Sequence record: OQ718158.1
Length of the DNA stretch: 64,000 nt
Reading direction: 5' to 3' (one strand)
Both the position numbers and the translations under genes were made by a program. Below, in pieces: positions 1 to 64,000 of this stretch; within the stretch, counting starts at the first letter, position 1, and the number at the start of each line of letters is the position of its first letter. Under the pieces are notes generated by a model that saw nothing but the letters and a program-made list of their open reading frames with translations, was not told where the DNA came from and searched no databases.

Positions 1-2
1 CT

Positions 3-110
3 AAGAAAGAACAGTACGATAAAGCGGTTGCTTATATTATTGAAGCTTTCAGTAAAGATGATATTTTGGCATTCATCGCTTCAGTAGAGGTTTCGAGCAA
101 CCCTAAATAA
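3..110 (+). CDS. 3' end of a hypothetical protein cut by the window edge
   Basis: Open frame from nt 3 (KKEQYDKAVAYIIEAFSKDD...SSNPK) to TAA 108-110; not in the ORF track. Confidence 0.55.
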   Translation, partial: KKEQYDKAVAYIIEAFSKDDILAFIASVEVSSNPK

Positions 111-155
111 TAATGAAGAACACAAGTTCTTCGTAACAATTTGGGAGATACTATT

Positions 156-398
156 ATGCTCAGTTTTCGTGAACAATTAGCAAAAGGCCAATTCGCTGCT
201 AAAGCTCAAACATCCATTCCTAAAAAGTCTGCTTTCTTAGGGACGATTACAGAAGATGGTTATTGTGATTATAATGCACCAGAAGATTCATGGTACATTA
301 CGAAAGACACAAAACGTGGTAATAGACTTCACAAAAGTACCATTGCTCGCAAACAACGAAAAGAATTGAAAAAAATTCGATTCGGTGAAGAAGAATAA
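156..398 (+). CDS. small basic hypothetical protein
   Basis: ORF track 141..398; ATG at 156 follows GGAG; terminator downstream. Confidence 0.65.
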   Translation: MLSFREQLAKGQFAAKAQTSIPKKSAFLGTITEDGYCDYNAPEDSWYITKDTKRGNRLHKSTIARKQRKELKKIRFGEEE

Positions 399-408
399 AA
401 TATAAATT

Positions 409-438
409 AAGGACTCTGATTACAGAGTCCTTTCTTTT
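409..438 (+). terminator. rho-independent terminator
   Basis: AAGGACTCTG-ATTA-CAGAGTCCTT then TCTTTT. Confidence 0.8.
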
Positions 439-449
439 CGGAGAATATA

Positions 450-1644: not shown

Positions 1645-1855
1645 AAAACAAATATTATCAGGTTACCGTAATAACACGTTGCACTACAATGACTTAAAGT
1701 ACTGGGTTGACCCACACAACAATAAGTCATTGTTGCTGTACAGAGATAAATTTCGAGATTTGTACGGTATATATGACACCCAGTTAATATACTTAGTTGA
1801 TACCGAACATTTTGCTCCTATGGTATACTTGTATTGCTTGTATAATTCCAAATAA
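1637..1855 (+). CDS. hypothetical protein
   Basis: 72 aa ORF overlapping the previous stop, TTG start. Confidence 0.5.
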   Translation: MAKKQILSGYRNNTLHYNDLKYWVDPHNNKSLLLYRDKFRDLYGIYDTQLIYLVDTEHFAPMVYLYCLYNSK

Positions 1856-3074: not shown

Positions 3075-3701
3075 ATGGAAAGACAAATAATTGCAATTAA
3101 CGGTACTATCGGTAGTGGCAAAGATACTTTTGGTGAAACTTTTATCAATAATGGTTACACAAGAATGTCATTTGCAACTAATCTTAAAGATTCAGTTGCT
3201 GCTATCTTTGGATGGGATCGTGAAATGCTTGAGGGTTCGACTAAGGAAAGTCGTAAACTCCGTGAAGAGCCAGACCAGTACTGGTGTGAGAAGTTGGGGC
3301 GTGATGATGTTTCCCCTCGATGGGTATTACAGAATTACGGTACTAATATTTTGCGTAAGTACTTTCATAATGATATTTGGGTCCATAGTTTAGAGAAGTC
3401 AATGCAATCTGTTGAAGGGAATATTATCATTACTGACTGTCGATTCCCAAATGAACTAAAAATGATTCGTTCATTAAATGGTATTGTGATTGAAGTTCAG
3501 CGTACCCTCCCACACTGGTATGGTTTAGCAGCATCTTTTAATAAAGGTGATATTAGCATGAAACCAATTGAGTTAGAATCAGTTCATGAATCTGAATGGG
3601 CGTGGATTGGTATCAATAATCCTGATATCATTGTACAAAATAATAGCACAATTGAAGCGTTGCACCAACAAGCATTGAGCGTTATTTATGCCAATAAGTG
3701 A
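3075..3701 (+). CDS. gp1: deoxynucleoside monophosphate kinase (T4 gp1-like)
   Basis: P-loop GTIGSGKDT; SFATNLKD, RWVLQNYGT, ITDCRFPNE motifs. Confidence 0.92.
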   Translation: MERQIIAINGTIGSGKDTFGETFINNGYTRMSFATNLKDSVAAIFGWDREMLEGSTKESRKLREEPDQYWCEKLGRDDVSPRWVLQNYGTNILRKYFHNDIWVHSLEKSMQSVEGNIIITDCRFPNELKMIRSLNGIVIEVQRTLPHWYGLAASFNKGDISMKPIELESVHESEWAWIGINNPDIIVQNNSTIEALHQQALSVIYANK

Positions 3702-3739
3702 AATTAAAACAATTAGGACTTGACATTCAAATCCTTCAA

Positions 3740-3745
3740 TAAATA
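3740..3745 (+). promoter_or_regulatory. late promoter-like TAAATA
   Basis: AATAAATA upstream of the tail sheath gene. Confidence 0.65.
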
Positions 3746-3795
3746 AGACTATACGAATATAATTCGAATAACCAATTATTTTTGGAGGATTTAAT

Positions 3796-6459
3796 ATGGC
3801 AGGAGATCTACTCTCACCTGGCGTTTCCATTTCAGTAACTGATGAAAGTATGAGTACTGCTGCTGCTCCTGGCACAGTACCACTATTTGTAATCGCTACT
3901 GCTGAAGACAAACTTGTTCCTGGTAGCAGTGCAATCGCTGCGGGAACCACTAAAGCAAACGCTGGTAAACTACAGCTACTAACATCACAGAAAAGCTCAC
4001 TAGATACATTTGGCTCACCAATTTTCCAAATGAACAATGGTTCAGTTGTTCAAGGTGACGAACTAAACGAATATGGTCTACATGCTGTATATTCTTATCT
4101 AGGTATCACCAACCGTGCATATGTTATTCGTGCTGATATCGATTTGGCTCAACTATCACCAAGTGCAACTGCACCAACTGGCCCAGTACCAAATGGTACT
4201 CTATGGTTTGATGCTGCTCAATCACAAATTGAAGCTTATGTTGCTAAGAAAGACAGCCCAAGCAGCTTCTATGACTGGCAATTGAAGCCTGTTACCATCG
4301 TAAGTTCTGAAGAAGTTGACGATGTTAGCCTAGTTGGTCTAAACGTTGATGATCTAGTTCTACGTTATAAGCCAAGTAATGGTCAAATGCTTATGTACAA
4401 ACGTGCAGCATCTGGTCTAGTACAGGTTGAAACTTATCTATCACCAATCAACAAAGTTCCAGTTGGTTCAACTGTTGAACAAGGTAACGTATGGATTCGT
4501 GATGGTTATACTCAAAATGGTTCAAACTATTTTGGCACTCGCTTTGTTCTAAAACGTTATGCATCTCTAACTCAAGTTTGGAATATCGTTCCAGCATATA
4601 CTGGTAATTCTTTCCAAGAAGTTGAAGCTAAGAGTGGTGTACTAAACAACAGTTATATTGCTTGCCGTTTTGATGACGATAGTAAGAGTTTCTCTTTCTA
4701 TATTCAAAGTGCAAAACTATCAGCAATTAGTGCTCCAGCAGTACCACTAGGTGAAACTGTTATTGAGCAAGCTGGTGAAGATAGTTATTTGACTTTCGCT
4801 TACCTAAACAAATCTGTTAAAGTACTTGCAGTACCACAAGGTGGCGTAATTAATACTCAAACTATCATCGATAATCTAAATGTTAGTGCTGATCTTATCA
4901 ATGATGGATTCAAATTCAAACGTGAATCTAATGGCGGTTTGGTAGTTACAAACACCAAAGGTTATAGCTTTAAAGTTACCCAAAGCGGTGATGATATTTT
5001 TGCAGCGAATGAACTAGCTAAACTAACTGTAGATAGTAACAACTATTCTCTAGTTAACGTTAATAACTTACGTGTTAGCTCTTCTGTTCCACGTAGTATT
5101 GCTAAAGACGGTACTATTTGGTATGATTTCGGTAATTCCGATAACCTAACTGTTACCATGTACATTGCAGATGTTGCAAATGACGAATGGGATCTAGTAC
5201 AAGAAGATAACAAATATGTTCAAGTTGATGAACCTGCGGCAGACCGTCTAATTTGGGTACGCCCTCTATCTCAAGGCATTGATGGTTATGATTTCTATCG
5301 TAACGTTGATGGTGAGTGGGTTAAACTAGACAATACTGACCAAAGTACTCTAAACGGTATGATTTTCGCTGACTTTAACTTCCCTGAACAAGTTGCTTCT
5401 GCTGCTCTTTATCAGAATGGTATGCTTGCAATTGACCTCGGTAATACCGAAGGTGTTGTTAAGAAAATGGTTAATGGTCAATGGCAAGTTGTTAGTGGTG
5501 TTAGTCTTGATGGTGCAGGTCTATTCGGTCGTGCAGCACAACGCAAACTAATCGTTGAAGCACTAGCTGCTGTAATCATCGGTAATGATGATATCCGTTC
5601 TGAATTCATCAACTTTAACCTAATCTGTGTTCCTGGTTATGTAGAAACTCTAGATGAATGTATTACCCTAAACACTGATCGTAAAGAAACAGCGTTTATC
5701 GTAACTGATGTACCTGCTCGTTTGAACCCAACCGGAAACGGTAGTGCAGTTCAAGAATGGGCTACCAACGCAAACAACGCACCAAGTAATGGTTCAGTAG
5801 GCCGTACTTCTGCATATGATTATGCTGCTCAGTACATGGGCTGGTGTTTAAGTACTAACGTTGATGGTGAAGAAGTTGCAGTTCCAGGCAGTACTGTTGC
5901 AATGCGTACCTATGCGTACAGTGATAGTGTTAGTTATGTGTGGTATCCACCTGCTGGTACTACTCGTGGTGTTGTAACCAACGCTGCAAGTACTGGTTTC
6001 ATTAATAGTGAAGGTGAATATCAACCAGTAGTATACAACCAAGGTCAACGTGACGTGATGTATACCAACAACATTAACCCAATTGCAATGCGTCCTAACC
6101 GTGGCTTGCTAGTATATGGTGATAAAACACTATCTGCTAACCAAACCTCTGCACTAAGCCGTGTTAACGTTGCTCGTTTGGTTGTTTACATTCGTCGTCA
6201 ACTAGAAATCATCTCTGAACCATTCCTATTCCGTTTGAATACTCCAAGTACTCGTCAGGAATTCAGTGGTGTAGTGAATAGCTTCCTAGCTGAAATCGTT
6301 CAACAACAAGGTCTATATAACTTCGCAGTAGTTTGTGACGAAAGTAACAACACTTCTGAACGTATTGACCGTAACGAACTTTGGATGGATATTGCAATCC
6401 AACCTACCAAGTCTATCAACTTCATTTACGTACCTATTCGTATTGAAAAGACTCAATAA
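3796..6459 (+). CDS. gp18: tail sheath protein (gp18-like, 887 aa with large central insertion)
   Basis: N-term LLSPGVSISVTDES; C-term RVNVARLVVYI...FAVVCDESNNTSERIDRNELWMDIAIQPTKSINFI; GGAGG SD. Confidence 0.95.
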   Translation: MAGDLLSPGVSISVTDESMSTAAAPGTVPLFVIATAEDKLVPGSSAIAAGTTKANAGKLQLLTSQKSSLDTFGSPIFQMNNGSVVQGDELNEYGLHAVYSYLGITNRAYVIRADIDLAQLSPSATAPTGPVPNGTLWFDAAQSQIEAYVAKKDSPSSFYDWQLKPVTIVSSEEVDDVSLVGLNVDDLVLRYKPSNGQMLMYKRAASGLVQVETYLSPINKVPVGSTVEQGNVWIRDGYTQNGSNYFGTRFVLKRYASLTQVWNIVPAYTGNSFQEVEAKSGVLNNSYIACRFDDDSKSFSFYIQSAKLSAISAPAVPLGETVIEQAGEDSYLTFAYLNKSVKVLAVPQGGVINTQTIIDNLNVSADLINDGFKFKRESNGGLVVTNTKGYSFKVTQSGDDIFAANELAKLTVDSNNYSLVNVNNLRVSSSVPRSIAKDGTIWYDFGNSDNLTVTMYIADVANDEWDLVQEDNKYVQVDEPAADRLIWVRPLSQGIDGYDFYRNVDGEWVKLDNTDQSTLNGMIFADFNFPEQVASAALYQNGMLAIDLGNTEGVVKKMVNGQWQVVSGVSLDGAGLFGRAAQRKLIVEALAAVIIGNDDIRSEFINFNLICVPGYVETLDECITLNTDRKETAFIVTDVPARLNPTGNGSAVQEWATNANNAPSNGSVGRTSAYDYAAQYMGWCLSTNVDGEEVAVPGSTVAMRTYAYSDSVSYVWYPPAGTTRGVVTNAASTGFINSEGEYQPVVYNQGQRDVMYTNNINPIAMRPNRGLLVYGDKTLSANQTSALSRVNVARLVVYIRRQLEIISEPFLFRLNTPSTRQEFSGVVNSFLAEIVQQQGLYNFAVVCDESNNTSERIDRNELWMDIAIQPTKSINFIYVPIRIEKTQ

Positions 6460-6465
6460 AACACT

Positions 6466-6490
6466 AAGGGAACCTTTTGGTTCCCTTTTT
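6466..6490 (+). terminator. rho-independent terminator
   Basis: AAGGGAACC-TTTT-GGTTCCCTTTTT after the sheath stop. Confidence 0.85.
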
Positions 6491-6503
6491 TATTGTTTAA
6501 AAT

Positions 6504-6509
6504 TAAATA
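6504..6509 (+). promoter_or_regulatory. late promoter-like TAAATA
   Basis: TAAATA upstream of the ATG at 6543. Confidence 0.5.
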
Positions 6510-6542
6510 CGTTATGTTATTAATTCAACGATCAGGAATAAT

Positions 6543-6789
6543 ATGGAAGAAATACTTAAAAAAACATTACAAGATGTAAGTAAAACTGTAGCAACACAGG
6601 ACGATGCCGTAAAAATCCTTAAAGCTTTTATACAAAATTTGGAACATTGTCGGTATAATTCGAGAATACAATGTTTACACAAATGGTAAATGGTCGGTTG
6701 GTGTAAACTATACAGATCATAAACAAGAAAAAAAGTACTTGTATTGTGTGAATATAGATTGGTTTCCTGTTGATGAGATACTTCAATAA
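6543..6789 (+). pseudogene. small gene apparently split by a +1 frameshift (about 81 aa if joined)
   Basis: AGGA SD + ATG 6543 gives MEEILKK...DAVK and stops at 6687; the +1 frame is open 6613-6789 with no start codon near its 5' end and reads like protein (LYKIWNIVGIIREYNVYTNGKWSVGV...FPVDEILQ). Confidence 0.45.
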
Positions 6790-6805
6790 AAGTGTAAGTA
6801 ATAGA

Positions 6806-6811
6806 TAAATA
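6806..6811 (+). promoter_or_regulatory. late promoter-like TAAATA
   Basis: GATAAATA upstream of tail tube 1. Confidence 0.6.
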
Positions 6812-6846
6812 ATATAAAGATGTCATTCCATAACAGGAGAATATAA

Positions 6847-7533
6847 ATGGCTACAATGCTTGATCGATATGGCGTTCCGCTCGCTGGCGGTGGTCGTATC
6901 TCTATGAAACAACCTAAAGCAAAATATAAATTCCGTGTTGTTTTCTTTGGCTTCGGTGCTAACGACGATGGCAATATGATTACTCTAGATACCAACACCG
7001 TTGGTGCTGTATCTGTATCACATGAAAACGTCACTGTGCATAGTTATAACAGTTCTGCTCACTATAAAGGTAAGTATACTTGGGATACTATTGATGTGGC
7101 TTTCCGTGATTCAGTTGGTAATGCTTCTGCTAAAGCTCTTTATAACCAAATGCGTAAAGAATTTAACTATTACAGTCAAGAATCTCGTATGACTGATTCC
7201 CAGTTCAAATTTGAAATGTGGATTCAAGAACTAGATGGTTCTAATAGTGAAAACACTTCTAACCTTTTTGAAGGTACTTTGAGTACTTGGGTATGTCAAG
7301 GCTGCTTTATTGAATCTAGTAACTTTGGTGACTGGGATTATTCCTCAAGTGAAGCACAAGTTATTTCTATGACAATTCAACCAGACGGCTGTGCAAAACT
7401 CGGTCCTAATGGTGAAGCGTTCGGTGATGAAATTACTGGTTTCGGTAACCCATCCACTGCTACCTCTATTAGTGGTGCACAAACCAACATTAGTAGTACT
7501 ACTCTACCAGATAGTAACTTCTACGAAAATTAA
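6847..7533 (+). CDS. gp19: tail tube protein (gp19-like), paralog 1
   Basis: Directly after the sheath region; QPKAKYKFRV, YKGKYTWDTIDVAFRD, DWDYSSSEAQVISMTIQPD tube-fold motifs; AGGAG SD. Confidence 0.8.
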   Translation: MATMLDRYGVPLAGGGRISMKQPKAKYKFRVVFFGFGANDDGNMITLDTNTVGAVSVSHENVTVHSYNSSAHYKGKYTWDTIDVAFRDSVGNASAKALYNQMRKEFNYYSQESRMTDSQFKFEMWIQELDGSNSENTSNLFEGTLSTWVCQGCFIESSNFGDWDYSSSEAQVISMTIQPDGCAKLGPNGEAFGDEITGFGNPSTATSISGAQTNISSTTLPDSNFYEN

Positions 7534-7549
7534 TTTTTCTTTTAAACGT

Positions 7550-7578
7550 AAGCCTCGAACTAGTTCGGGGCTTTTTTT
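7550..7578 (+). terminator. rho-independent terminator
   Basis: AAGCCTCGAAC-TA-GTTCGGGGCTTTTTTT. Confidence 0.85.
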
Positions 7579-7582
7579 ATGC

Positions 7583-7588
7583 TAAATA
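7583..7588 (+). promoter_or_regulatory. late promoter-like TAAATA
   Basis: CTAAATAA directly after the terminator, upstream of tube 2. Confidence 0.6.
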
Positions 7589-7622
7589 AAGTATAATACC
7601 TTATAAAATAAAAGAGGTTGCT

Positions 7623-8399
7623 ATGGCAAATAACATGATTAATAAATATGGCGTTCCTCTACCATCAGGACGTAACCGTTCAATGTTACAACCGAAAGCA
7701 AAATACAAATTTCGTGTTATTGTATATAATTTCGGTACTGATATAGATGAGCGTGATCACATTGCATTAGATGTTGATAAAGTTGATAGACCTACTGTTA
7801 CTTTCAGTACTCATAAACTATATCAATTTACAACAAATACATCTTACATTGGTAGTCACGATTGGGACCCAATTACTTTAACTATCCGTGATTCAGTTGG
7901 TAATGCATCAGCAAAAGCCTTGTCACGACAATTACAGAAACAATTAGATTTTCAACGAAGAATTACTTCCAGAACTGACCATGATTATGGTTCATATAAG
8001 TTCGGAGTTGTCATTCAGATGTTGAATGGTCGCAACTCTGATGATACACTAGAAGACTTGGGAAGAAACACATTAGTTAATGCAACAACTGCCGCTACCA
8101 ACAATACTGGATTAGTCAACGCTGTTGATCAGTTCATTGGTGGTTCATCATACAATAGTGCTGGCGTTATGGAGTACTTTGTACTAACAGGATGTGTTAT
8201 ACAAAATATATCATATGATTCACTTGACTATAGTTCAAGTTCTCCTGTTGAAATGGTTATTACAATAAAACCTGATAATTGTATCCAATTCGATAATATC
8301 GAAGAAATGTACAGTACTAGAATAAATTCACTTTTACCTGAAAACGTAAACCAAGGATTAGATATCATTGACCGTGTTTTCGGTAGCATTGGATTATAA
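7623..8399 (+). CDS. tail tube-like protein, paralog 2
   Basis: Shares YGVPL..G...QPKAKYKFRV, RDSVGNASAKAL and DYSSS..V....I.PD with 6847..7533. Confidence 0.8.
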   Translation: MANNMINKYGVPLPSGRNRSMLQPKAKYKFRVIVYNFGTDIDERDHIALDVDKVDRPTVTFSTHKLYQFTTNTSYIGSHDWDPITLTIRDSVGNASAKALSRQLQKQLDFQRRITSRTDHDYGSYKFGVVIQMLNGRNSDDTLEDLGRNTLVNATTAATNNTGLVNAVDQFIGGSSYNSAGVMEYFVLTGCVIQNISYDSLDYSSSSPVEMVITIKPDNCIQFDNIEEMYSTRINSLLPENVNQGLDIIDRVFGSIGL

Positions 8400-8410
8400 G
8401 GAGATAACCC

Positions 8411-9505: not shown

Positions 9506-10522
<1,017 letters not shown>

Positions 10523-52900: not shown

Positions 52901-55900
52901 GTAACAGATTGAACTGAACCAAAATCCGCACCAAATTTAGCATTAGCTGCACTTGGAGTACAGGAGATGAACTCACCAGTACTTAAATTATTCTGACTCC
53001 AAATAACAAAGTCTTTAGCAATAGTTGTCCAGTCTTGTTGAGTACCACTATCATTTACATCTTCAAAAATCCAGCCATGTTCTTTTAGATATTCACCATA
53101 TCCACAAATGAAAGTATAAACTTCTTGGTATGTATTGAATATTTTACCATATTCTAATGTACCTTCAGATTTCCATTCATTGTAATGAACAACAGTTCTG
53201 TCTTCCAATTTAAGAGTTACTTTTCTTCCATTTTTAACTGGAATTTTATATTTAAATTTAGCACCAACTAAATCATAACCATCAATTTGATATGCACTAC
53301 CATTCCAAGTAATTTTTACTGCACTCATTTGCTCATCGCGAATGTTATTAGAACGAACTAGACCGATAGTTTGGTTTTCTTGTGAAATCAAACCGAAAGA
53401 TTTAGCAGTGAATGTCAATTGGTCTGCTTTAGTAAAGCCACCAATTTTGTGAGCGACATTGACATAAGAAGAACGAACAACGTCACCGTATTTGGTGGTA
53501 ATGTTCTTATTCTGATACATCAAATAGTCACTAACAAACATTTGATAACCGATAGTACGGGTGTTTTTCTCACCATGTACTAATGTAGTACTGTCAAAGT
53601 TTAGACGCTTACGGGTTTCACCATAAAGGAACTGTGAACCATCAGTATAAACTGGTTTAAGGTTATCATTACGGGTATCCCAGTAATAGTTTGCAAACTG
53701 TGCTGGTTTTGCTTTGTATAGAAGAAGCATTTGGTCATAAGCAAACATCGCAGTGTTCATGTAAGTGAATTCCATGTCACCCATGTCACCATAAGACCAC
53801 GGTTCTGCACGATGATCTAAATTACCACTAACAAGACCTAAAACTTCAGGTGCAATATACTCAACTTCACAAATATCAATACCAGTACTGGTTTTCTCGC
53901 CAGTCTTAGTGATTTTAAATGGCTGTACACCGAAACGCTTGTATTTGTCATATTGACCACGGCGTTCACCTGACAAAATAGTACCAGTACTGCTATCACC
54001 GATAGTACCATCAATATCCCACAATCCACTTGGGACCAAATCACCATTTTCATTCATTACTAGTGCTTCATACACATAAACAACATCACCCTCACGTTCA
54101 CCAACTTGAACTGCGGTTGGTTCGTATTCTTGGTTCCACCAAGTAGGACGTTGAGAGAAGCCCATCATTTCCCACGGATGGGTTGCTGGACGATATGTGC
54201 CATATTGGTCAGTATAGATTGCACGCCATGAACCACGAGCAGGAATTTCAGTACGTTGACCATCAACAACATAATAACTACCAGTATAGTTCCAAGTTCT
54301 CCAGTTATTTGCATCATAATCATGAGTACTGTTACTAATGCCATTGGTTGCTGTGAAGTTAATGTAACCACGTAGTAATAGAGTTTTCTTTTCTTCTGCA
54401 CTATAATCAGTACCAGTGAAATATGGAGTTGGGAATAGGTCTTCACTGTTTAGTACTGGTTTATAATCAATATCCTTGAAAGTAAGATCAATACTATTAA
54501 AGATACGATTTTCCAATTCAAAAACTACGTCATCCATTTTATCAACACCATTGATAACACGGTATGCTTTTGAAATAATACCAGTATGACTGATATTATA
54601 ACAGCTAGATTTACTACCAGCAGTTAAGAATGTTGCTTTTTGTGGTGTATAAGCTTGCAAAATACCCAAGAACTGTGGAGTTGGTGGGACAAATGCACGA
54701 ATAAACCCAGCAGTGCTTGCAACGTTGTCATAGTAGAATGGGAATGTACTATCACGTCCCATATTAATAGCTGTTAGAATCGCATCTACGATGTTTGATG
54801 CACTATTACCAAGAAAAGCACTTGGGTCTTCTTCATACAAACGAAGCATTTGAGTGTTGAACTTGTTAATGAAGCGGAAGTATTCTGCTTGCATAAACAT
54901 GATTGATTCAAACAAATCAATATCTTCATTAGCGGTATGTGCCATTAGTGGTAACATGGACGCTTCGTTTTGAATAATTTTAGTGCCTACACCATTATTA
55001 ACCAAACCAGCAGCCAAACGTTCTTCGTAATTGTTAAAGTCATCAGCAGAACCAGATGTAATATTCTTTTGAATAATATCTTGGAAGTGCAGGGTGTAAT
55101 CACCTTGGTTGATGTATTCAATGTTTGAATTATATGGGTTATTTTGTAGATTAATTGGAACTTCATATGCACCCAACTCTTTATTAGGAGTGATAGTGCT
55201 ACTATAAGTTCTGATTTGTACAACAGAATCTTCATCCAAATCAACAGAGCTATCAATTGTAATACTTTGTACTTGATTATTAACTACAGTTTTTGTGTAT
55301 TCTTTTATTTCCACACCATCAACAACTAGTTCGATAATATCATCAGAATTATCTAGTACTTTTTGTGCCAATTCAAATGTATGATTGTACTTAACGCTTT
55401 GTACCCCATCACCAACGATAACATGCCAATCAAGATATGTTTCACGTTCTGCTTTGTAATATTGATAAGTTCTGTCAACTTCAATTACATAAGCATACAT
55501 TCCTTCAACTGGGTCTTTGAAACTTTCCATGTCATAAACAGTACTGAACACGCGGAACATTACTGTACGTTCAACCTGTGGAGTTTGTTTAACATATTGT
55601 TTGGAGTATTCAGTACTACGAACCCAATCAGTTTCTAGGTTCATTGTATTACCTTCACCAATTACGTTATAGTAATATAGTCCATCAATTTCAACTTCCA
55701 CACCCAAATGCTCGTAAGTATAACGAGTTGATTGTAGGAAATTCTCATATGTGTAATAATTGTAATCACCTAGTTCAATGTTATAACCATAAACGCTATC
55801 AGTTGCATAATTATAGTTAATTTTAAAACCAAATAGTGAAGAACCAGTAAAAGTACTTGATGGATAGGTAGTAGTGTTGTTTAGTTTAACACCATTACGG

Positions 55901-56970: not shown

Positions 56971-57006
56971 TTTTGGACTCCATATAATTCGTTCATTCAT
57001 TTGATT

Positions 57007-57012
57007 TATTTA
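57007..57012 (-). promoter_or_regulatory. late promoter-like TAAATA
   Basis: AATAAATA-like motif (TATTTA on +) upstream of the giant gene. Confidence 0.55.
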
Positions 57013-57018
57013 TGATAT

Positions 57019-57044
57019 AAAAAAGACGTTCCGAAGAACGCCTT
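57019..57044 (-). terminator. rho-independent terminator with cUUCGg loop
   Basis: minus strand AAGGCGTTC-TTCG-GAACGTCTTTTTT. Confidence 0.88.
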
Positions 57045-57050
57045 AATGTG

Positions 57051-60000
57051 TTATGAACCAATGTTAATGTTACTCTTAGCCAAGGAATTGACTATCTGTA
57101 CGTTATCAACTGATGCAGTACTTAAGAAAATCTGGTCAGAACGTGAAGGGATTTCAAATAGTGAGCCAAATTTAGAGTTAGGGTTTTGAGCTACGATAAC
57201 AATAGTACTAATATGTCGTCCTAATTGGGAGTGAATGTATGTACACAAGTCTGTGTAATAGAAACTTTCACCAAAATCCCAGTTGTCAACATTAAAATAC
57301 TCGTTAGTTAGTGCTACGACATTTTGACGAATTTCATCATCACTCATTGTACTGTTAGGCAATTTGACGACTTTAAAATCTGCTTTATAATCTTCAGCAG
57401 CACTCGCACCAAATAATGGTAGATATTCTGCACTATGCCAAATAATACTGTCACTGATGACTATTTTTTGTTCAACTTCTTTAAAAATGTCTTTCAATTC
57501 AACAGATGTTGGCGGTTTAGGCATATTACCTTGTGTTCCATTCTTCAACCATACATCAACTTCAGTTTTGTATGAATTGGTTAATACATACATGTCAATC
57601 AAGTTTGTTCTACTTGGGTCAATGCGATTATCATCTGGTGCATAATGTTTCCAGTGGAAATCAATACCAGTTCTTGCATTCGTTTTTACGGTATATTGTG
57701 AAGTTACATCTTTATAACCATAATAATCTAACTTTTGGTTAACATCAGCATTAGTACCGATATTAACAATAGCACGATAAAACGCAAGTTCAGGAGTTGC
57801 AGCAGTTGTATCATCAGAATAGGTCAAGTTCTCAATTAATTGGTTTAAACGGTCATTATTATTACCAACAGTTTGTTCAATGAAGTAATATTTACCATCA
57901 TAGTTAAAGCCAACTATAAAGCCTGAACCTTTACTATAGATACCACTCAATGTTGTTGAGCGAATAGCATTGTTGCGAACAAATTCACTTCTCTTATACG
58001 CATTAGTTTCTGCAAGTGCCTGATCCATTGTATAAGCCCATGAAGAATCAAGAATAGTGAAAGTATCATTCGGTAATGACAGTACTGATATAGTGAAATC
58101 ATCGTTTTCTTGGAAAACCAATATACCACCATATTTAACTGAATCTTCACCAGTCCAATTTGGTACAATTTCTCTGAATTGATTAGGTTCTAGTGGGATT
58201 CCATTACTATCAACGTTTTCAGAGGTGATAACCACACGAGAACCATCAAGATACCCGTTTTCTTGTTGAATTGTGTCATAAATTTGGAAATCTATGTTAC
58301 TTGTCAACCCAGCATTACTATTGCTTGTGGTATTTGATGATAAAATTTCAATTTTGTCACTTTGAACACTACCAGTACTAATATCAGTTATCTTTTTAGA
58401 AGAAACGAAGTAAAAACGAACTTTATCACCACCAACGAACACATATTCAACGCCATTCGCATCAAATTCCCAGGTTTCAGCAGTATATTTGATGTTAATC
58501 ATAACAAGAACTTCATTTCCATTATAAGAAATAGTATCTTCATCAGTACTGATTTCTAATGGAATCCAAGAAGTTGTTTCTTTATCATGAATAATAACAA
58601 AATCTGTCTTTTTATCAAGCATTGCAGCGATTGCTTGCACTTCGACACTATTAAAACGTGTTCTGTATTGTAAAATGTACTCTTGTGCTTGCATATTTGA
58701 TGAAACTGAAGTACTTAGAACGTAATATCCATTATCAAGAACACTAACAATACTAGCCCACACAGTAGTTCCGGCATTTGAAAACTTAATCAACGTACCA
58801 ACTTGATAATTTCCGAATACGTTACCTGTTGCCCCCATAATACGACCATACGTATTAGTTGCGTAATTAGAATTGTATTCAGGTGTCCATTTTTGTTGAA
58901 TTTCAATACCAATTGTATTCGGTGGATATGCTTGATAACGTTGGATTACAGCATTCTCACCAATCAATGGCTGAATATTATCAATTACAATACTAGCATT
59001 TGTTTTGGTAGTTGGTAATTGTAAAGATTTATTAAATTGTGTGTTTTCTTGATACATTGAACCATCATCACTAAACACATCAGTGTTTTGATACTTACCA
59101 GTTGGATCATTAATATCAATGAATCGTGACTGTCCACTATATAAACGGTTAATTGCTTTAGATTTAAGAACTGTGTTACCCAAACTCAACGGAGCAATGT
59201 TATAGTCTTCACCGTTAACAAAACGGTTTTGAGTGTAATACATTTGTGGAGCACGAGCCTTAATTTGTTCAATTGTTTCTGCACTTTGTGCACGATCTGA
59301 TTCATATTGCAATGTGAAACGAATATCCAAAGTACTGGATTCATAGCTTGATTGTGTTTTGGTTCTATAGGTGTATTTTACACTTTTGTTCTGGATTTCA
59401 GACGTTTTAATGTTGTATGTTTCACCATTACTAACACGATACCATACACGATACGTCCCACGAGGAACAACACCACTACGAGAATCAGGATACTTAATAG
59501 TAATCTGGTCTTTATCACGAGTTGTGACAGCAAAGATTGTTTTTAGTTGACGGTTAACAGTATTGTATGCGATACTTTCCATAGATGGAACTTTGGTCCA
59601 TTTAGTACGTACAATACCATCTTCGTTGATTTCCTGAACCCAAACATCAGTTTCGTTGATATTATCTACGTTGATGTCTTGGATACGGTTTTCTTCACGA
59701 ATATTATATTGGTAATCTTGGTATGTCAATGTCCCTTGAACAAAATAAACGAAGAAACCAGTATTTGGTGAACTAAATCCGTTACCATCATTCTGATAAA
59801 CGATATATTTTTGCTCTTGTGGTTCAGGGTGACGCTCTTCAACACCAACTGCTGTAATATCAGGGTTGACAACTTCAAATGTCATCGATTCACCATTAAC
59901 TGTAGCTGTGAATGGAAGACTTGGTGCTGACATTGGAATTGTATTCATACGATATAGCTGACGAGAAACACCATTGATATCGATACGTTTAACCGGATTA

Positions 60001-60512
60001 CCAAACTGGTTAGTACTGACAAATGAACTGTTCATAACTAGAATGAAGTTCTCATACCAGTTTGTGTCCATTGGGTCATTCCAACGAATGATTTTATCCT
60101 TAAGTGATTCGTTAAAACTATTACGAACGTCTTGGTTGGTTTTTATTTCTGTTAATTTAGCAACTGCACGACCTGGATATGAACGGCGTGGAGAGTAAGA
60201 AATCATTTTTGCGAGTTTCAGTACTGATGCACGACGAGTAGCAGTATCTAGGAAGTTCTCACGAGTGTTTAAATCCATACGGAATGCTAAGTTCTGTCCT
60301 AGCATAGAAATGGTATCTAGAATAAAGATGAACTGGTCGTTTTCGATCCAGTCGTTGAAAGAATCTGGGTACGTAGCACGTAGATAGTCAATCATACTTT
60401 GACGGATTGTATCAAAGTCATAAGCTGTTAGATTGATCTTATAAAAGCTTTCATATACTTGAGTCCAATCTTCACCAGCGTATAAATTTGATTGCCTTTT
60501 TTGTTGTGACAT
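57051..60512 (-). CDS. gp6: baseplate wedge protein gp6-like (1153 aa)
   Basis: DFDTIRQSMIDYL...ENFLDTATRRASVLKLAKMISYSP; IKARAPQMYYTQNRFVNGEDY. Confidence 0.9.
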   Translation of the reverse strand: MSQQKRQSNLYAGEDWTQVYESFYKINLTAYDFDTIRQSMIDYLRATYPDSFNDWIENDQFIFILDTISMLGQNLAFRMDLNTRENFLDTATRRASVLKLAKMISYSPRRSYPGRAVAKLTEIKTNQDVRNSFNESLKDKIIRWNDPMDTNWYENFILVMNSSFVSTNQFGNPVKRIDINGVSRQLYRMNTIPMSAPSLPFTATVNGESMTFEVVNPDITAVGVEERHPEPQEQKYIVYQNDGNGFSSPNTGFFVYFVQGTLTYQDYQYNIREENRIQDINVDNINETDVWVQEINEDGIVRTKWTKVPSMESIAYNTVNRQLKTIFAVTTRDKDQITIKYPDSRSGVVPRGTYRVWYRVSNGETYNIKTSEIQNKSVKYTYRTKTQSSYESSTLDIRFTLQYESDRAQSAETIEQIKARAPQMYYTQNRFVNGEDYNIAPLSLGNTVLKSKAINRLYSGQSRFIDINDPTGKYQNTDVFSDDGSMYQENTQFNKSLQLPTTKTNASIVIDNIQPLIGENAVIQRYQAYPPNTIGIEIQQKWTPEYNSNYATNTYGRIMGATGNVFGNYQVGTLIKFSNAGTTVWASIVSVLDNGYYVLSTSVSSNMQAQEYILQYRTRFNSVEVQAIAAMLDKKTDFVIIHDKETTSWIPLEISTDEDTISYNGNEVLVMINIKYTAETWEFDANGVEYVFVGGDKVRFYFVSSKKITDISTGSVQSDKIEILSSNTTSNSNAGLTSNIDFQIYDTIQQENGYLDGSRVVITSENVDSNGIPLEPNQFREIVPNWTGEDSVKYGGILVFQENDDFTISVLSLPNDTFTILDSSWAYTMDQALAETNAYKRSEFVRNNAIRSTTLSGIYSKGSGFIVGFNYDGKYYFIEQTVGNNNDRLNQLIENLTYSDDTTAATPELAFYRAIVNIGTNADVNQKLDYYGYKDVTSQYTVKTNARTGIDFHWKHYAPDDNRIDPSRTNLIDMYVLTNSYKTEVDVWLKNGTQGNMPKPPTSVELKDIFKEVEQKIVISDSIIWHSAEYLPLFGASAAEDYKADFKVVKLPNSTMSDDEIRQNVVALTNEYFNVDNWDFGESFYYTDLCTYIHSQLGRHISTIVIVAQNPNSKFGSLFEIPSRSDQIFLSTASVDNVQIVNSLAKSNINIGS

Positions 60513-60570
60513 AATTTATTCCTTTAAATCAGTAAAGTACTAGTTCAGTACTGGGAATTATATATAGAAA

Positions 60571-60576
60571 TATTTA
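60571..60576 (-). promoter_or_regulatory. late promoter-like TAAATA
   Basis: GATAAATATTTC on minus, upstream of gp6. Confidence 0.6.
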
Positions 60577-60580
60577 TCCA

Positions 60581-60609
60581 AAAAGAAAAGCACCCCGAAG
60601 AGTGCTTTT
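60581..60609 (-). terminator. rho-independent terminator with cUUCGg loop
   Basis: minus strand AAAAGCACTC-TTCG-GGGTGCTTTTCTTTT. Confidence 0.85.
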
Positions 60610-60614
60610 ATAAT

Positions 60615-61010
60615 TTACAAAGATGATACAGAATAGGTAGCCATTCTGTTGTTACTTCTTGCATCAAAAACTATAGTTAATTCTTCAAGAGTATTGAGAA
60701 CAACATATTCAAGTACTATATCCATCTGATAACCGTACTCAATTCTTGATATTTGAAGTTTCTTTAAGCTTAAACGTGGGTCCAAGCTAATAATTCTACG
60801 GGCATCTGCTTCCAAAAGGTTGATTGTATTATAACCATCCAATTCAAATAGCAAATCCCACGCAATGAACCCATAATCAGCATCAAATGCACGTTCACCT
60901 TTTTTTGTATTGAAATGATTCATTAAATCCTGACGAACCAATTCACTGTCATACAATGTTTCAGTTCTTCCAACTACTGGAGTTGAAAAACCTTTAAAAA
61001 CAATTGCCAT
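60615..61010 (-). CDS. gp25: baseplate wedge / sheath initiator gp25-like
   Basis: LVRQDLMNHFNTKKGERAFDADYG...DLLFE...RIISLDPRL. Confidence 0.9.
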   Translation of the reverse strand: MAIVFKGFSTPVVGRTETLYDSELVRQDLMNHFNTKKGERAFDADYGFIAWDLLFELDGYNTINLLEADARRIISLDPRLSLKKLQISRIEYGYQMDIVLEYVVLNTLEELTIVFDARSNNRMATYSVSSL

Positions 61011-61025
61011 TATGTATTTCCTTTA

Positions 61026-61514
61026 TTATACGGATTCGACGATGCGAGCCATCTTCTCCGCTCTGGATGTGGTTTGTTTGTACCACGAACTATCACGCAT
61101 TTCTTTACCAGCAGTTTTATAATCACCACGACCGAGAGCAGCCATCGCTTTTTTGAAATTTAAAACTTTTGATTTACCCATTTGGAACACCATAAACCAC
61201 AATACACGCTGAACCTGTACTGGAGCAGTCATTCCAAATTGATCATAGATTGATTTTGCGTCATTGTAAGCGGTCTGAGCATCTTTTATAAGGAGAGCAT
61301 CAGCTTCTGCTTCAGTGAGTCCATTTTTGAAACTTTCACCCTTAAGTACAAGGTGACCGTAACCAATGGTATCAAGACCTAGACTGTCTTTATATACCCA
61401 AAACTTATCATTTTTAAAATAACCAAGTTTTTTCTGATACGCAATAGTACCTTCAAATTCTTTAATTTCTTTAAAAAATTGTTCGTCGGTATTTTTGATT
61501 TCCCATTTACTCAT
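61026..61514 (-). CDS. stand-alone T4-type (GH24) lysozyme, possible endolysin
   Basis: EFEG...YKDSLGLDTIGYGHL (E/D/T triad), FQMG, SSWYKQTTSRAEK. Confidence 0.88.
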   Translation of the reverse strand: MSKWEIKNTDEQFFKEIKEFEGTIAYQKKLGYFKNDKFWVYKDSLGLDTIGYGHLVLKGESFKNGLTEAEADALLIKDAQTAYNDAKSIYDQFGMTAPVQVQRVLWFMVFQMGKSKVLNFKKAMAALGRGDYKTAGKEMRDSSWYKQTTSRAEKMARIVESV

Positions 61515-61548
61515 AAAGATTTCCTCATTATTATTTATAGTACTGAAA

Positions 61549-61554
61549 TATTTA
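61549..61554 (-). promoter_or_regulatory. late promoter-like TAAATA
   Basis: CAATAAATATTTC at the gp5 stop; second copy at 61532-61537. Confidence 0.55.
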
Positions 61555-64000
61555 TTGACATGCCTCTAATCTACGTGCCATTAATTCAGCACGGCGTGTA
61601 GTTTGACGATACCAAGCTGAATTTCGAATTTGAGCAGCAGCTTGCTTGTAGTTACCTTTAGCCATTTCAGATAGCATTGACTTAAATTTCATTACACCAC
61701 CTTTACCCATCTGGAATACCATTTGACATAGAACTTGTTGTGCCATGTAAGGTGTTTTCATCTTATAAGAAGCGTAAATGGATTTTGCGTCATATATAGC
61801 CTTACTACTATCACGCACCAACATATCATTGGCTTCCTGTTCGGTAATCCCACCAGAGAAGTTTTCACCACCAACAATCAAGTGACCGTAACCAATAGTT
61901 GGGAATCCACGACTATCCAAATATCTCCAAAATTTGCCATTACGGTAATATCCTTTAGCTTGTTGATACGCCATTGTTCCTTCATATTCTTTCAATTCAG
62001 AAATAAATTGTGAATCACCCGGAACAACTTTCCAATCAATTGCAGTCTTATCAACATTACCCACATTGTATGATTCTTGTGCAGTAGGTACTGGAGTACC
62101 ACCTGAACGTTGTGTTCTTCTACGACGAGGGACATGACGAGAACCACGTTGAGAATACCCAGTACCGATAGTTTTAATTTTAGTTGTTACAACTAATTCA
62201 TCACTATCAACAGAAGGTTGAACAACAGCTTTCGGTGCTGCTTGGTTCGTTGCTTGTCCTGCAATTAATGTTTTATTTCCCGCTTCAGAACCTGTACCAG
62301 TCTGGGATGCATAGAATAATCCAGGGTCAACTGAACCACTAAATCCTAGTACGTTGGCAGAGGTAACTCTTATTTCAAATTGAATAACACCATTAGCTTT
62401 ACCGATAACTTGACCTTTTTGAACAACGTCTTTATTGAGCAAATCTGATTGAATATTATAAAATACAGATTTATATCCAGACTTATGTTGAACCAATAAA
62501 GCACCATTAGTGATAACAACTACACCGCCATCTGGAGCTACAACATCACCCTTGCACTGTATTTCCCAGCCACTTCTATCAGCTTTACCACCACCACTAG
62601 TCGGGACACCTTTCCCCCAATAACCGTATTGGCGAATGGTTCCACTACACGGCATGAACATATGAAGACCTTCATATGTAATGCTATAACCAGTCATACC
62701 AGGATCAGAAGTCATTAAATCTTGTGTTTGAACTTGTTCTGTTTCTGTTGTATAATTTACATATTGAATTGCTTCAGTGTCCTGTACTGGAGCTAAAGTT
62801 GGAGCTACATCATTAGCAGGTTCAGGTTGAACTGGGGATTCACTATTCCCACTACCACCACCTTGACGTGGAGGTTCAACAGTACTGCCGTGATTCTCAG
62901 CATCAACCCAAGCCGATATATCATGTATATGATCATTCAAGCCAGCAGATGGGGTGCGGAAGTTTGGTGCATTAAATTCAGCAGTACCACTATTACCACC
63001 ACTGTTAACAGTAAGAGTTTGACCACCACCACTAATAATAGCTGATGAAGAACCAATAAGATTAGCACTGGTAGCAGCAGAGATTGACGCATTAGAACCA
63101 GCAGTTATATCAGTACTGCTACCACTTTGCATACGTAATGAAGCTGCTGTTACTAAACGTAAATCTGCTCCAGCGTTAATAACAACCTGACCACCAACTT
63201 TAGCATCCAATGCACCAACCAAATCTAGTTTAGTGTTTGCACCAACACGAGCATTGAAGTCTGCTCCACTTTCAATATTATATGAGCGTCCAGCAACCAT
63301 GTTAATATCTTGACCTGCACGAATGTTAATATTCTTATCACAGTGCATTTCAATATCACCTTCACCAGTGAATTTAATACGTGCAGTACCATCACGGTTA
63401 ATTAAAAGAACATCACCAGAGGCTTCAGATAACAACAACTGTGCACCACTACGTGTTTTAATTACAACGCCTTCATTTTTACGAGAACCAACACGAGTAT
63501 CGTTCACTGGGTTATTGAATTGGGTATCCTGATAACCATCTGGATCTTGATCCCAAGTAGGTGCTGTTAATTCTTCTTCTGTGTAACCATCATCAATAAT
63601 AAAACTGTTACCACGAGGTGAGGAAAGACCATAAACAGTACTGGTGGTCTGGCGAGTACTACTACGGTTAGCAACACCCGCTTCCTCATCATAAAGTAAG
63701 TTTTGTTTTTTCAGACCTGCAATAATTGGAACGTTTGCATATTTGTCTTGAGTACTGGTAGAAATTGTATTACGGTCATAATCAGTTACGGGTAATGGCA
63801 TATCAGTACCTGCATAATTGCTTATTTCAGTAGCCATCCCAGGAACCATCGTATTCATACGTTGGTCATAAACACAACCAATCCAATACGCTTGGAATGT
63901 TCTTGCTTGTGCAAATATAACAACAACAGTACATCCGACATCAGGTGGAACCGCCCAAAAACCATATCCCTTTGGATATTGACCATAAGCATCAGCACTT
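61552..64000 (-). CDS. gp5: baseplate hub/central spike gp5-like with degenerate M23 domain and C-terminal lysozyme (5' end outside window)
   Basis: Frame stays open from 63858 to the window edge (YGFWAVPPDVG OB-fold motif); IKTRSGAQLLL; beta-helix repeats; EYEG...LDSRGFPTIGYGHL. Confidence 0.88.
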   Translation of the reverse strand, partial: SADAYGQYPKGYGFWAVPPDVGCTVVVIFAQARTFQAYWIGCVYDQRMNTMVPGMATEISNYAGTDMPLPVTDYDRNTISTSTQDKYANVPIIAGLKKQNLLYDEEAGVANRSSTRQTTSTVYGLSSPRGNSFIIDDGYTEEELTAPTWDQDPDGYQDTQFNNPVNDTRVGSRKNEGVVIKTRSGAQLLLSEASGDVLLINRDGTARIKFTGEGDIEMHCDKNINIRAGQDINMVAGRSYNIESGADFNARVGANTKLDLVGALDAKVGGQVVINAGADLRLVTAASLRMQSGSSTDITAGSNASISAATSANLIGSSSAIISGGGQTLTVNSGGNSGTAEFNAPNFRTPSAGLNDHIHDISAWVDAENHGSTVEPPRQGGGSGNSESPVQPEPANDVAPTLAPVQDTEAIQYVNYTTETEQVQTQDLMTSDPGMTGYSITYEGLHMFMPCSGTIRQYGYWGKGVPTSGGGKADRSGWEIQCKGDVVAPDGGVVVITNGALLVQHKSGYKSVFYNIQSDLLNKDVVQKGQVIGKANGVIQFEIRVTSANVLGFSGSVDPGLFYASQTGTGSEAGNKTLIAGQATNQAAPKAVVQPSVDSDELVVTTKIKTIGTGYSQRGSRHVPRRRRTQRSGGTPVPTAQESYNVGNVDKTAIDWKVVPGDSQFISELKEYEGTMAYQQAKGYYRNGKFWRYLDSRGFPTIGYGHLIVGGENFSGGITEQEANDMLVRDSSKAIYDAKSIYASYKMKTPYMAQQVLCQMVFQMGKGGVMKFKSMLSEMAKGNYKQAAAQIRNSAWYRQTTRRAELMARRLEACQ

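Follow-up and report, generated by a model that had tools for sequence, protein, structure and literature searches.

The 64,000-nucleotide stretch analyzed here (the window) belongs to sequence record OQ718158.1, where it starts at position 124001 of the genome of Escherichia phage vB_Ec-M-J (100% identity over the first 20 kb). This phage, a jumbo myovirus with a genome of 350-380 kb, is assigned to Asteriusvirus (the 121Q/PBECO4 group), a genus within the RaK2-like phages. The window contains structural, tail-fibre and baseplate genes together with a few nucleotide-metabolism genes, and the palindromic hexamer AGTACT is scattered throughout it in large excess (Table 1). For the null models that take genes into account, we called 50 open reading frames (ORFs) greedily, which cover 95.6% of the window. 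Whole-genome counts were made on Ecwhy_1 (354,537 bp, pieces L001-L008), to which the window is 99.0-99.6% identical. Other relatives were sampled over ~41 kb around the capsid gene of each, and the phage PA5oct as two fragments (L013 and L030).

The window holds 135 copies of AGTACT at a GC content of 37.5%, for which base composition predicts 21.4. An earlier note on this DNA, made from the sequence alone, had put the count at about 130 against about 22 predicted, a correct but understated observation; within the first 10,000 nucleotides, our recount of 26 AGTACT, 3 ACTAGT and 6 TGTACA agrees with its 26, 3 and about 5. Markov models predict 22.7 copies at order 1, 36.4 at order 2 and 57.2 at order 3, and at these three orders AGTACT ranks first among the 4096 hexamers. 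The fourth-order model, which the note had proposed as a check, does absorb the excess (120.4 expected, rank 296), because the pentamers AGTAC (239 copies) and GTACT (209 copies) already hold it; the lower orders and the gene-aware nulls do not.

Coding DNA accounts for 127 of the sites, on both strands, with 81 read as AGT-ACT, 16 as xAG-TAC-T and 30 as xxA-GTA-CTx; the remaining 8 are intergenic or lie at gene boundaries. Our own ORF calls bear out what the note had said of sites in three frames, in genes of both strands and between genes (60536, 60547 and 61539). When codons were shuffled synonymously, keeping each protein and the codon usage of each gene, 37.8 +/- 5.5 sites were expected (28.2, 2.5 and 7.1 in the three frames, in the same order), and shuffling codon order gave 34.1. 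A dicodon-preserving shuffle, which by construction holds the 81 in-frame AGT-ACT constant, gave 109.5 +/- 3.6 and was surpassed in both frames left free (16 vs 6.9 and 30 vs 21.5). Under the synonymous null AGTACT is again the first of 4096 hexamers (z = 15.4), followed by the overlapping words CAGTAC and GTACTG, and the next-best of the 64 palindromic hexamers is GTGCAC with z = 2.1. The enrichment thus survives dicodon shuffling and AGTACT stands out among the palindromes, the two points on which the note had staked its claim of an iterated palindrome resembling HIP1, the highly iterated palindrome of cyanobacteria; the signal therefore lies in the DNA.

Several further counts illustrate this. 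The window encodes 162 Ser-Thr dipeptides, and 81 of them are spelled AGT-ACT against 27 expected. For the pair GTA-CTG, whose Leu codon is rare, the count is 20 and the expectation 2.1. Seven sites fall in the 2808 nt of intergenic DNA, where 0.94 are expected (p = 6e-5). All 135 contexts are unique at +/-8 nt, so AGTACT is not a dispersed repeat. Its one-mismatch neighbour AATACT/AGTATT is not depleted (78 observed, 78 expected), the remaining neighbours have observed/expected ratios (O/E) of 0.75-1.56 at order 2, and the most enriched ones vary at the outer positions (GGTACT/AGTACC, 3.5x). The excess of AGTACT is a real signal in duplex DNA, and neither a codon motif nor a peptide motif.

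Table 1. AGTACT sites and related features of the window (window coordinates)
Feature	Position	Strand	Remark
Dispersed array, 135 AGTACT	1..64000		One per 474 bp, each context unique
AGTACT starts, part 1	712, 990, 1311, 1578, 1698, 3044, 3277, 3358, 3853, 4821, 5344, 5851, 5890, 5989, 6247, 6734, 7282, 7495, 7806, 8173, 8313, 8438, 8991, 9258, 9738, 9796		
AGTACT starts, part 2	11661, 12900, 13046, 13795, 13958, 14420, 14588, 15719, 16466, 16549, 17720, 18074, 19543, 20041, 20751, 20977, 21111, 21201, 22026, 22974, 23101, 24950, 25040, 25655, 25961, 26312, 26735, 26774, 27146, 27206, 27560, 27620, 28490, 29000, 29680		
AGTACT starts, part 3	30970, 30991, 31114, 31279, 31409, 32234, 32666, 33102, 33258, 33401, 33557, 35295, 36242, 37020, 38348, 38579, 38621, 39147, 39627, 39666, 39732, 40597, 40665, 41678, 42187, 43032, 43452, 43706, 44001, 44766, 45826, 46380, 46419, 47438, 47851, 48420, 48934, 49710		
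AGTACT starts, part 4	50199, 50410, 50420, 51217, 51547, 51607, 52006, 52361, 52978, 53587, 53884, 53986, 54325, 54452, 55355, 55540, 55612, 55852, 57117, 57204, 58081, 58374, 58545, 58710, 59331, 60012, 60220, 60536, 60547, 60712, 61539, 62881, 63112, 63637, 63655, 63751		
Preferred octamer CAGTACTG, 40 copies	3276..63643		Commonest octamer in the window
CAGTACTG starts	3276, 5889, 8437, 9737, 11660, 13794, 14587, 16465, 19542, 20040, 20976, 22025, 23100, 24949, 25960, 27619, 28999, 29679, 31113, 32665, 43705, 44765, 45825, 46379, 47437, 48933, 50198, 51216, 51606, 52005, 53883, 53985, 55539, 58080, 58544, 60219, 60546, 62880, 63111, 63636		
Full 12-bp palindrome TTCAGTACTGAA	11658..11669		
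Full 12-bp palindrome TTCAGTACTGAA	45823..45834		
Full 12-bp palindrome TTCAGTACTGAA	51604..51615		Within the 3334-aa ORF
Two intergenic AGTACT 11 bp apart (AGTACTagttcAGTACT)	60536..60552		Between ORFs 57051-60512 and 60615-61010
Intergenic AGTACT	61539..61544		Between ORFs 61026-61514 and 61552-63999
Three AGTACT (31114, 31279, 31409)	31114..31414		306-bp stretch without a called ORF
Intergenic AGTACT	1698..1703		
ORF of 3334 amino acids (aa)	46999..57000	-	Homologue of 121Q gp582, conserved in 121Q and UE-S1; 23 AGTACT (2.3/kb), example of an evenly loaded long gene

The favoured word extends beyond the hexamer. The octamer CAGTACTG compares with expectations of 0.75 (order 0) and 6.2 (order 3) in the window, and its 38 coding copies with 3.3 under the synonymous shuffle and 10.6 +/- 2.8 under the dicodon shuffle. 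In Ecwhy_1, AGTACT occurs 986 times against 120 expected and is the first hexamer at Markov orders 0-3 (z = 79 to 30); CAGTACTG is the commonest octamer there too (222 vs 3.8), and AGTAC is present in all 10 top octamers. The enrichment in that genome rises with each symmetric extension, from 2.3x for the central GTAC and 8x for the hexamer to 59x for the octamer, 138x for the 10-mer TCAGTACTGA and 545x for the 12-mer TTCAGTACTGAA (22 copies vs 0.04 expected). The left and right flanks are nearly independent of each other. Every frame shows an enrichment of C at -1 and of G at +1 relative to frame-matched backgrounds; at -1, C makes up 46% and G, the least frequent base, 9%. Asteriusvirus, RaK2 and GAP32 prefer C/G flanks, and XaC1 prefers A/T flanks. 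From this graded 12-bp palindromic consensus and the drift of its flanks between lineages, we infer recognition by a two-fold-symmetric, sequence-specific protein.

Regular spacing, which the even spread of sites in the window (5-12 per 4 kb) might have indicated, was rejected as a general property. Outside the early region of Ecwhy_1 the spacing is near exponential, as in a Poisson process (variance/mean 0.96-1.06 at 1-2 kb), and values of up to 2-2.8 at 10-20 kb arise because of regional differences. No periodicity of 10-90 kb was seen in Ecwhy_1, for which no formal fit was made and which spans few such periods.

The excess is shared among the RaK2-like phages. In the sampled regions we counted 102 AGTACT against 17 expected in Ecwhy_1, 82 against 14 in GAP32, 80 against 14 in RaK2, 62 against 14 in Salmonella phage 7t3, 121 against 14 in Xanthomonas phage XaC1, 90 against 13.8 in Pectobacterium phage CBB and 82 against 14 in Yersinia phage fHe-Yen9-04. 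Across these seven lineages the enrichment is 4.5-8.7x and GCGC is absent from all seven (7/7), and the hosts of AGTACT-rich phages span seven genera (Escherichia, Salmonella, Klebsiella, Cronobacter, Pectobacterium, Yersinia and Xanthomonas). Two distant relatives with normal GCGC lack a strong enrichment (SCTP-2, 20 vs 14 or 1.4x; Atu_ph07, 3 vs 14 or 0.2x). The sister phage PA5oct, which infects Pseudomonas, purges AGTACT ~15-fold, with 2 copies in all against 30.8 expected (none where 14.1 are expected in one fragment, 2 against 16.7 in the other; p = 2e-11) and a single AGT-ACT among its Ser-Thr dipeptides against 16.5 expected. Its GTAC, GCGC and all one-mismatch neighbours are at normal level, and in the first fragment AGTACT is the sole absent palindromic hexamer among those with an expectation >4. 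Because the trait spans seven host genera, is reversed in PA5oct and is relaxed in one sub-lineage (below), its cause must reside in the phage lineage rather than in a single host. In this form, as a lineage-encoded cause, the proposal of the earlier note that the phage itself encodes the process held up.

The same genomes are strongly depleted of other palindromes. GCGC has no copy in the window and none in the 354 kb of Ecwhy_1, where ~350 are expected, and 26 of the 64 palindromic hexamers occur there 0-1 times. Relative to the synonymous null, the window is purged of CTGCAG (1 vs 35), CAGCTG (0 vs 27), GGTACC (0 vs 19.5) and ACCGGT (0 vs 14.6). The total purge of GCGC across host genera suggests a phage-intrinsic cause, for instance a phage nuclease directed against host DNA, beyond host restriction alone. 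We considered whether AGTACT could be a by-product of the purge, such as deaminated GCGC or AGCGCT, and rejected this on numbers: about 350 GCGC and 40 AGCGCT are expected genome-wide, against an excess of ~870 AGTACT and 1500 GTAC.

The pressure for AGTACT has measurably shifted protein composition. In Ecwhy_1, Ser-Thr dipeptides are found at 1.48x of expectation and Val-Leu at 1.30x, whereas the reversed pairs Thr-Ser and Leu-Val are both at 0.95x. XaC1 and RaK2 have the same asymmetry, and PA5oct has neither excess. Four of the six tRNA genes of Ecwhy_1 (L001:13570-17333) are for Ser or Thr, namely Thr(UGU) twice, Ser(GCU) and Ser(UGA), the others being Asn and Met. Ser(GCU) reads AGT, and the set fits the inflated usage of AGT and ACN codons.

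To follow individual sites, we aligned 25 five-way orthologues (9317 codons) of deep lineages, in which fourfold-degenerate positions are ~50% identical, near saturation. Of 208 AGTACT positions, 156 were found in one lineage only. Where two deep lineages have a Ser-Thr dipeptide in common, each spells it AGT-ACT in 75-100% of cases against ~17% expected, and joint use is 91 against 90.0 under independence. The single-lineage positions and the near-saturated use of AGT-ACT together indicate that sites turn over while a directional pressure persists. A second alignment, within Asteriusvirus (47 genes, 19,478 codons), compared the window (W), 121Q (Q) and UE-S1 (U), whose distances give the tree (W,(Q,U)). 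In the comparison of the window lineage with 121Q, ACT retains its third position in 84-91% of cases after AGT versus 59-62% otherwise (p = 7e-4 and 1e-7), and within Asteriusvirus GTA is kept in 77-86% inside A-GTA-CT versus 46-48% elsewhere. No such synonymous protection is seen toward UE-S1 (71% vs 68%). Polarised by parsimony, 121Q had 25 gains and 4 losses and UE-S1 7 gains and 29 losses, counts that are indicative only because they rest on diverged sites and a fixed tree. The densities are 2.11 AGTACT per kb in the window, 1.77 in 121Q and 1.12 in UE-S1; ph0011, the nearest relative of UE-S1, is intermediate at 1.3, and A4, JNE01 and Turkey5 have 1.9-2.2. The overall range is 0.9-1.3 per kb for UE-S1 with ph0011 and 1.6-2.2 for 121Q with A4, JNE01 and Turkey5. 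The losses in UE-S1 strike all positions of the word and involve many substitution types, with C>T/G>A in 1 of 21 single-step losses. At least two sub-lineages thus still maintain AGTACT today, one has relaxed it, and density is held while single sites turn over. The log-odds shift for AGT-ACT at Ser-Thr dipeptides is ~1.6 overall and ~3.3 where the dipeptide is conserved, a per-site strength of weak selection or conversion bias.

AGTACT is also concentrated around early promoters. Its density triples at 288-315 kb of Ecwhy_1 (the early region; L006 and L007), where an array of paralogous strong sigma-70-type promoters precedes many very small ORFs. These promoters fall into two classes, AAAAGTACTTGCAA...N16...TATAATgtttta and agtaTTGACA...AGTACTG-TATAATagttta. 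Among 122 matches to TTGNNN-N16-18-TATAAT in Ecwhy_1, the last T of AGTACT is the first T of the -35 element in 19 (AGTACTTGCAA), and AGTACT lies directly upstream of the -10 element in 17 (AGTACTG-TATAAT). Early regions also hold 13 of the 22 full 12-mers. The fixed word in Asteriusvirus early promoters could be an operator or a methylation-sensitive switch.

The earlier note had named methylation-directed repair among possible agents. The annotated C5 cytosine methylase of Ecwhy_1 (Ecwhy1_69, PF00145; L001:28153-29013) aligns over its full length to the catalytic domain of DNMT3A/3B (E = 1e-23) and is closer to these eukaryotic enzymes than to M.HhaI or M.HaeIII. This similarity fits the 5-methylcytosine (m5C) that bisulfite sequencing is reported to have revealed at a CpG site in RaK2 DNA (PMC3622015); AGTACT contains no CpG. 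Close orthologues of the enzyme were not found in 7t3, XaC1, fHe-Yen9-04, Serratia phage BF and the Erwinia pEa phages, where a divergent copy is possible. We therefore rejected the C5 methylase as driver. The signature of very-short-patch repair is missing as well, both in the undepleted deamination neighbour AATACT/AGTATT and in the losses of UE-S1. With a CpG-type enzyme, patchy orthologues and undepleted neighbours, an origin like that of Dcm/Vsr is not supported. The apparent truncation of the C5 methylase gene in UE-S1 does not explain the decay of sites there: the gene is interrupted by an intein (Hint and LAGLIDADG domains) after about residue 77, giving an ORF of 626 aa instead of 286 (L018:250-2130), the same split match pattern is found in TH47, JNE01, ph0011 and A4, and JNE01 and A4 have normal AGTACT density.

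A Dam-family N6-adenine methylase (Ecwhy1_356, PF05869) matches the AGTACT-rich clade. All of its 67 strong matches in the phage database lie there, and its synteny is conserved, next to a cytidylyltransferase gene. It is a legitimate candidate agent by this clade match, a distribution that many genes must share. PDB and NCBIfam offered no structure of a homologue and only a generic family name on its specificity, the genes flanking both methylase genes have no recognisable or informative Pfam domain, and no Vsr- or MutH-like gene is annotated. Of the methylation-directed process in the earlier note, then, the C5 version falls (a CpG enzyme, without a repair signature, that does not track the trait), while an adenine methylase, a binding or genome-organising protein and a repair bias remain candidates.

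Other insertions separate the sub-lineages of Asteriusvirus. UE-S1 (L016:2786-4780) and ph0011 (L022:2687-4681) carry a 2-kb gene with an endonuclease domain after the neck gene, the thymidylate synthase ORF has 1554 nt in UE-S1 (L016:21831-23384) versus 930 nt elsewhere, and in 121Q a gene annotated as group I intron-associated (L015:22100-22864) adjoins the baseplate wedge gene. These insertions are of mobile-element type. Separately, nine or more paralogues that bear the annotation 'DNA condensation protein' stand in tandem at L007:14881-28251 of Ecwhy_1. A scan of one of them (L007:14881-16029) showed it to consist of RCC1 repeats (a beta-propeller), and the name was therefore probably mis-transferred from 'regulator of chromosome condensation'.

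A persistent pressure that belongs to the phage lineage produces and keeps the sites. It weakly favours each additional AGTACT, works chiefly through synonymous codon choice and is strong enough to raise Ser-Thr and Val-Leu. Single sites are dispensable and turn over, and density alone is kept. As the agent we favour, at roughly even confidence, a phage-encoded reader of AGTACT that profits from having many sites. It would be a two-fold-symmetric, sequence-specific protein, namely an orphan adenine methyltransferase or a DNA-binding protein, to which the sites across the genome would serve as a 'self' word in the manner of HIP1, Chi or uptake sequences. Several points weigh against such a reader. 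No protein is linked to AGTACT, and the Poisson-like spacing shows no periodicity or spacing rule that would suggest an architectural role. Characterised Dam-family (PF05869) methylases act on GATC, and in UE-S1, where sites decay, the candidate methylase is still intact and retains the NPPY motif, so its inactivation is rejected as the explanation of that decay. The 18 published sigma-70-type promoters of CBB read AAAAATAGC-TTGCAT and lack the word. The gains and losses were polarised by parsimony at near-saturated synonymous sites on an assumed tree, which recombination between sub-lineages could distort. Finally, the observed sharing of sites (91 vs 90.0) is predicted equally by selection on density and by a neutral conversion drive.

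Such a drive is the alternative that we take most seriously, as possible but doubtful. A bias of phage mismatch correction or gene conversion, acting on heteroduplex DNA, which is abundant in T4-like recombination-dependent replication, would turn near-matches into AGTACT while the word itself is useless; Elhai proposed a neutral drive of this kind for HIP1 (PMC4390886). It would account for turnover with density kept (156 of 208 positions in a single lineage), the Poisson-like spacing, near-saturation at long-lived Ser-Thr dipeptides, the filling of permissive non-coding positions as well, the promoter positions that are not conserved in CBB, and the plain decay in UE-S1, which looks like a drive turned off. 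The enriched one-mismatch neighbours differ at outer positions, the HIP1 pattern according to Elhai (PMC4390886). However, no class of neighbours is depleted, gains and losses are spread over many positions and substitution types, the m5C signature is missing and the C5 methylase is CpG-type, neither a Vsr- or MutH-like gene nor an informative domain beside the methylases is annotated, and comparable conservation of HIP1 was interpreted as selection by Xu et al. (PMC5861425). A role as operator, with AGTACT the site of a regulator of strong early promoters and the other ~900 copies as spill-over or a buffering sink, is quite unlikely. The two sharp promoter offsets, the tripled density and the share of 12-mers in the early region speak for it. 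A conserved operator role was nevertheless rejected on the promoters of CBB, a phage that is equally AGTACT-rich; the promoter arrangement is therefore lineage-specific and may have spread by duplication, since the Asteriusvirus promoters are obvious paralogues whose fixed positions can be inherited in this way. A regulator also leaves unexplained the enrichment in all frames of late structural genes and the dipeptide shifts.

We judge it very unlikely that AGTACT is the site of a replisome enzyme, such as a T4-type topoisomerase II, a primase or a nicking enzyme, with dense sites aiding replication, unlinking and transcription of a 350-kb genome. The palindromic geometry and the enriched GTAC would suit a two-fold-symmetric enzyme, and a cut at A^GTAC^T would leave ends staggered by 4 bases, as type IIA topoisomerases typically do. 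Among the proteins of the phage are topoisomerase II subunits, a primase, endonuclease VII and SbcCD-like proteins, whose tie to the word is putative; PA5oct has T4-like core replication genes too, yet purges AGTACT, and primase sites are usually 3-5 nt and need no palindromy. That there is no cause at the DNA level (codon or dicodon usage, Ser/Thr-rich tail fibres, a dispersed repeat or a by-product of the palindrome purge) is extremely improbable. It could appeal to the 64% of coding sites that are in-frame AGT-ACT, to the fourth-order Markov expectation, and to other codon-derived words that are frequent in the window, for instance ACCAGT and CACCAG. The tests reject it: synonymous and codon-order shuffles yield 38 and 34 sites, the enrichment spans three frames and intergenic DNA, the dicodon shuffle is surpassed in the two unfixed frames, every context is unique, the alternative Ser-Thr codon pairs hold none of the purged palindromes, and PA5oct, with similar proteins and codon usage, has almost no AGT-ACT.

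A phage-encoded reader could also be joined with the palindrome purge in one picture, which we consider rather unlikely as a whole. The clade would label its own DNA by sequence and not by base modification, with ~1000 (C)AGTACT(G) read by a clade-specific protein as the positive mark, and the absence of GCGC and ~25 palindromic hexamers as the negative mark. Phage enzymes (host-DNA nucleases, recombination, protection, packaging) would thereby tell phage from host DNA. On this view, the purge of the identical hexamer in PA5oct would point to recognition of AGTACT as an ancestral activity of the whole group, one whose effect flipped sign, from nuclease target to protected or useful site.

The literature open to our search yielded no phage clade described as accumulating a palindrome, nor any account of over-represented palindromes in phages, and the papers on RaK2, GAP32, CBB, 121Q/PBECO4, phAPEC6, fEgEco12 and PA5oct do not mention AGTACT. 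A text match to 'ScaI' in the RaK2 paper proved to be the culture medium SCAI and not a digest, and neither ScaI nor RsaI is among the enzymes of the published fEgEco12 digests. These two enzymes would cut AGTACT-rich genomes very small, or not at all if the sites are modified. The density of AGTACT is a simple marker for the clade in metagenomes. A nucleotide-level pressure that reshapes the proteome (Ser-Thr +48%, Val-Leu +30%) also bears on models of codon usage, gene finding and phage engineering.

Several known systems resemble AGTACT in part. Uptake signal sequences and DNA uptake sequences (USS/DUS), Chi and the FtsK-orienting polar sequences (KOPS) are words over-represented genome-wide and read by an uptake receptor, RecBCD and FtsK, respectively. 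They share with AGTACT hundreds to thousands of dispersed, weakly favoured copies, set in genes by codon choice, with turnover between relatives and selection or drive. They are, however, non-palindromic and orientation-dependent, whereas AGTACT is a perfect palindrome. As a separate observation, the E. coli Chi word GCTGGTGG is itself ~11-fold over-represented in Ecwhy_1 (31 vs 2.8 expected, strand-biased 7 vs 24); it spells GCT-GGT-GG, preferred Ala/Gly codons, so this excess may be a codon effect. Very-short-patch repair by Dcm/Vsr shapes CCWGG and its neighbours in E. coli and illustrates how a sequence-specific repair bias linked to a methyltransferase can lift one word. AGTACT differs in having no depleted deamination neighbour and no C>T-biased losses, and the C5 methylase targets another site. 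The SlmA-binding site of E. coli nucleoid occlusion, GTGAGTACTCAC, has AGTACT as its central hexamer, but we rejected this identity: the flanks are wrong, G being rarest at -1, and GTGAGTACTCAC has 0 copies in 354 kb.

Phages usually avoid restriction sites (Rusinov et al. 2018, PMC6286503). A restriction-modification system of ScaI type recognizes the same word (AGT^ACT), and PA5oct avoids AGTACT as a restriction target would be avoided. The clade, in contrast, enriches it 6-8x while purging CTGCAG, CAGCTG, GGTACC, ACCGGT, GCGC and ~20 other palindromes.

The closest likeness is to HIP1 (GCGATCGC), which is 15-300x over-represented in cyanobacteria (Xu, Lawrence and Durand 2018, PMC5861425; Elhai 2015, PMC4390886). 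HIP1 sites are kept beyond neutral expectation and are quasi-periodic at 10-90 kb (Xu et al. 2018, PMC5861425), and cognate orphan methylases (CGATCG, GATC) are known that co-occur with the word (Elhai 2015, PMC4390886). Both words are short palindromes, hyper-abundant genome-wide (59x for the AGTACT octamer), found in all frames of coding DNA and in non-coding DNA, and each is a clade trait with exceptions and with variant words in some lineages. In both, one-mismatch variants concentrate at the outer positions and sites are conserved beyond neutral expectation, in the phages at close range, with only density conserved at deep divergence. The differences are also clear. AGTACT is another word with an AT-rich core (CGATCG has 0 copies in Ecwhy_1), its genome is that of a 350-kb virus and not of a cell, and the remainder of that genome is under extreme palindrome avoidance. 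The phage cytosine methylase is CpG-type and unrelated to AGTACT, the adenine methylase is a candidate only, and no 10-90 kb periodicity was seen (no formal fit). AGTACT therefore has the genome-wide excess, frame independence and conservation of a HIP-type word but is not HIP1 itself. These phages offer a small, fast and tractable model for the 30-year-old HIP1 problem, with a genome of 350 kb, growth on E. coli K-12 and ~90 sequenced relatives. Loss of the word can be watched in one lineage and its purge in a sister group, and phage crosses and recoding could tell selection from biased repair. Among phages, which are otherwise known to lose palindromes under restriction pressure, the AGTACT clade is the counterpart of HIP1.

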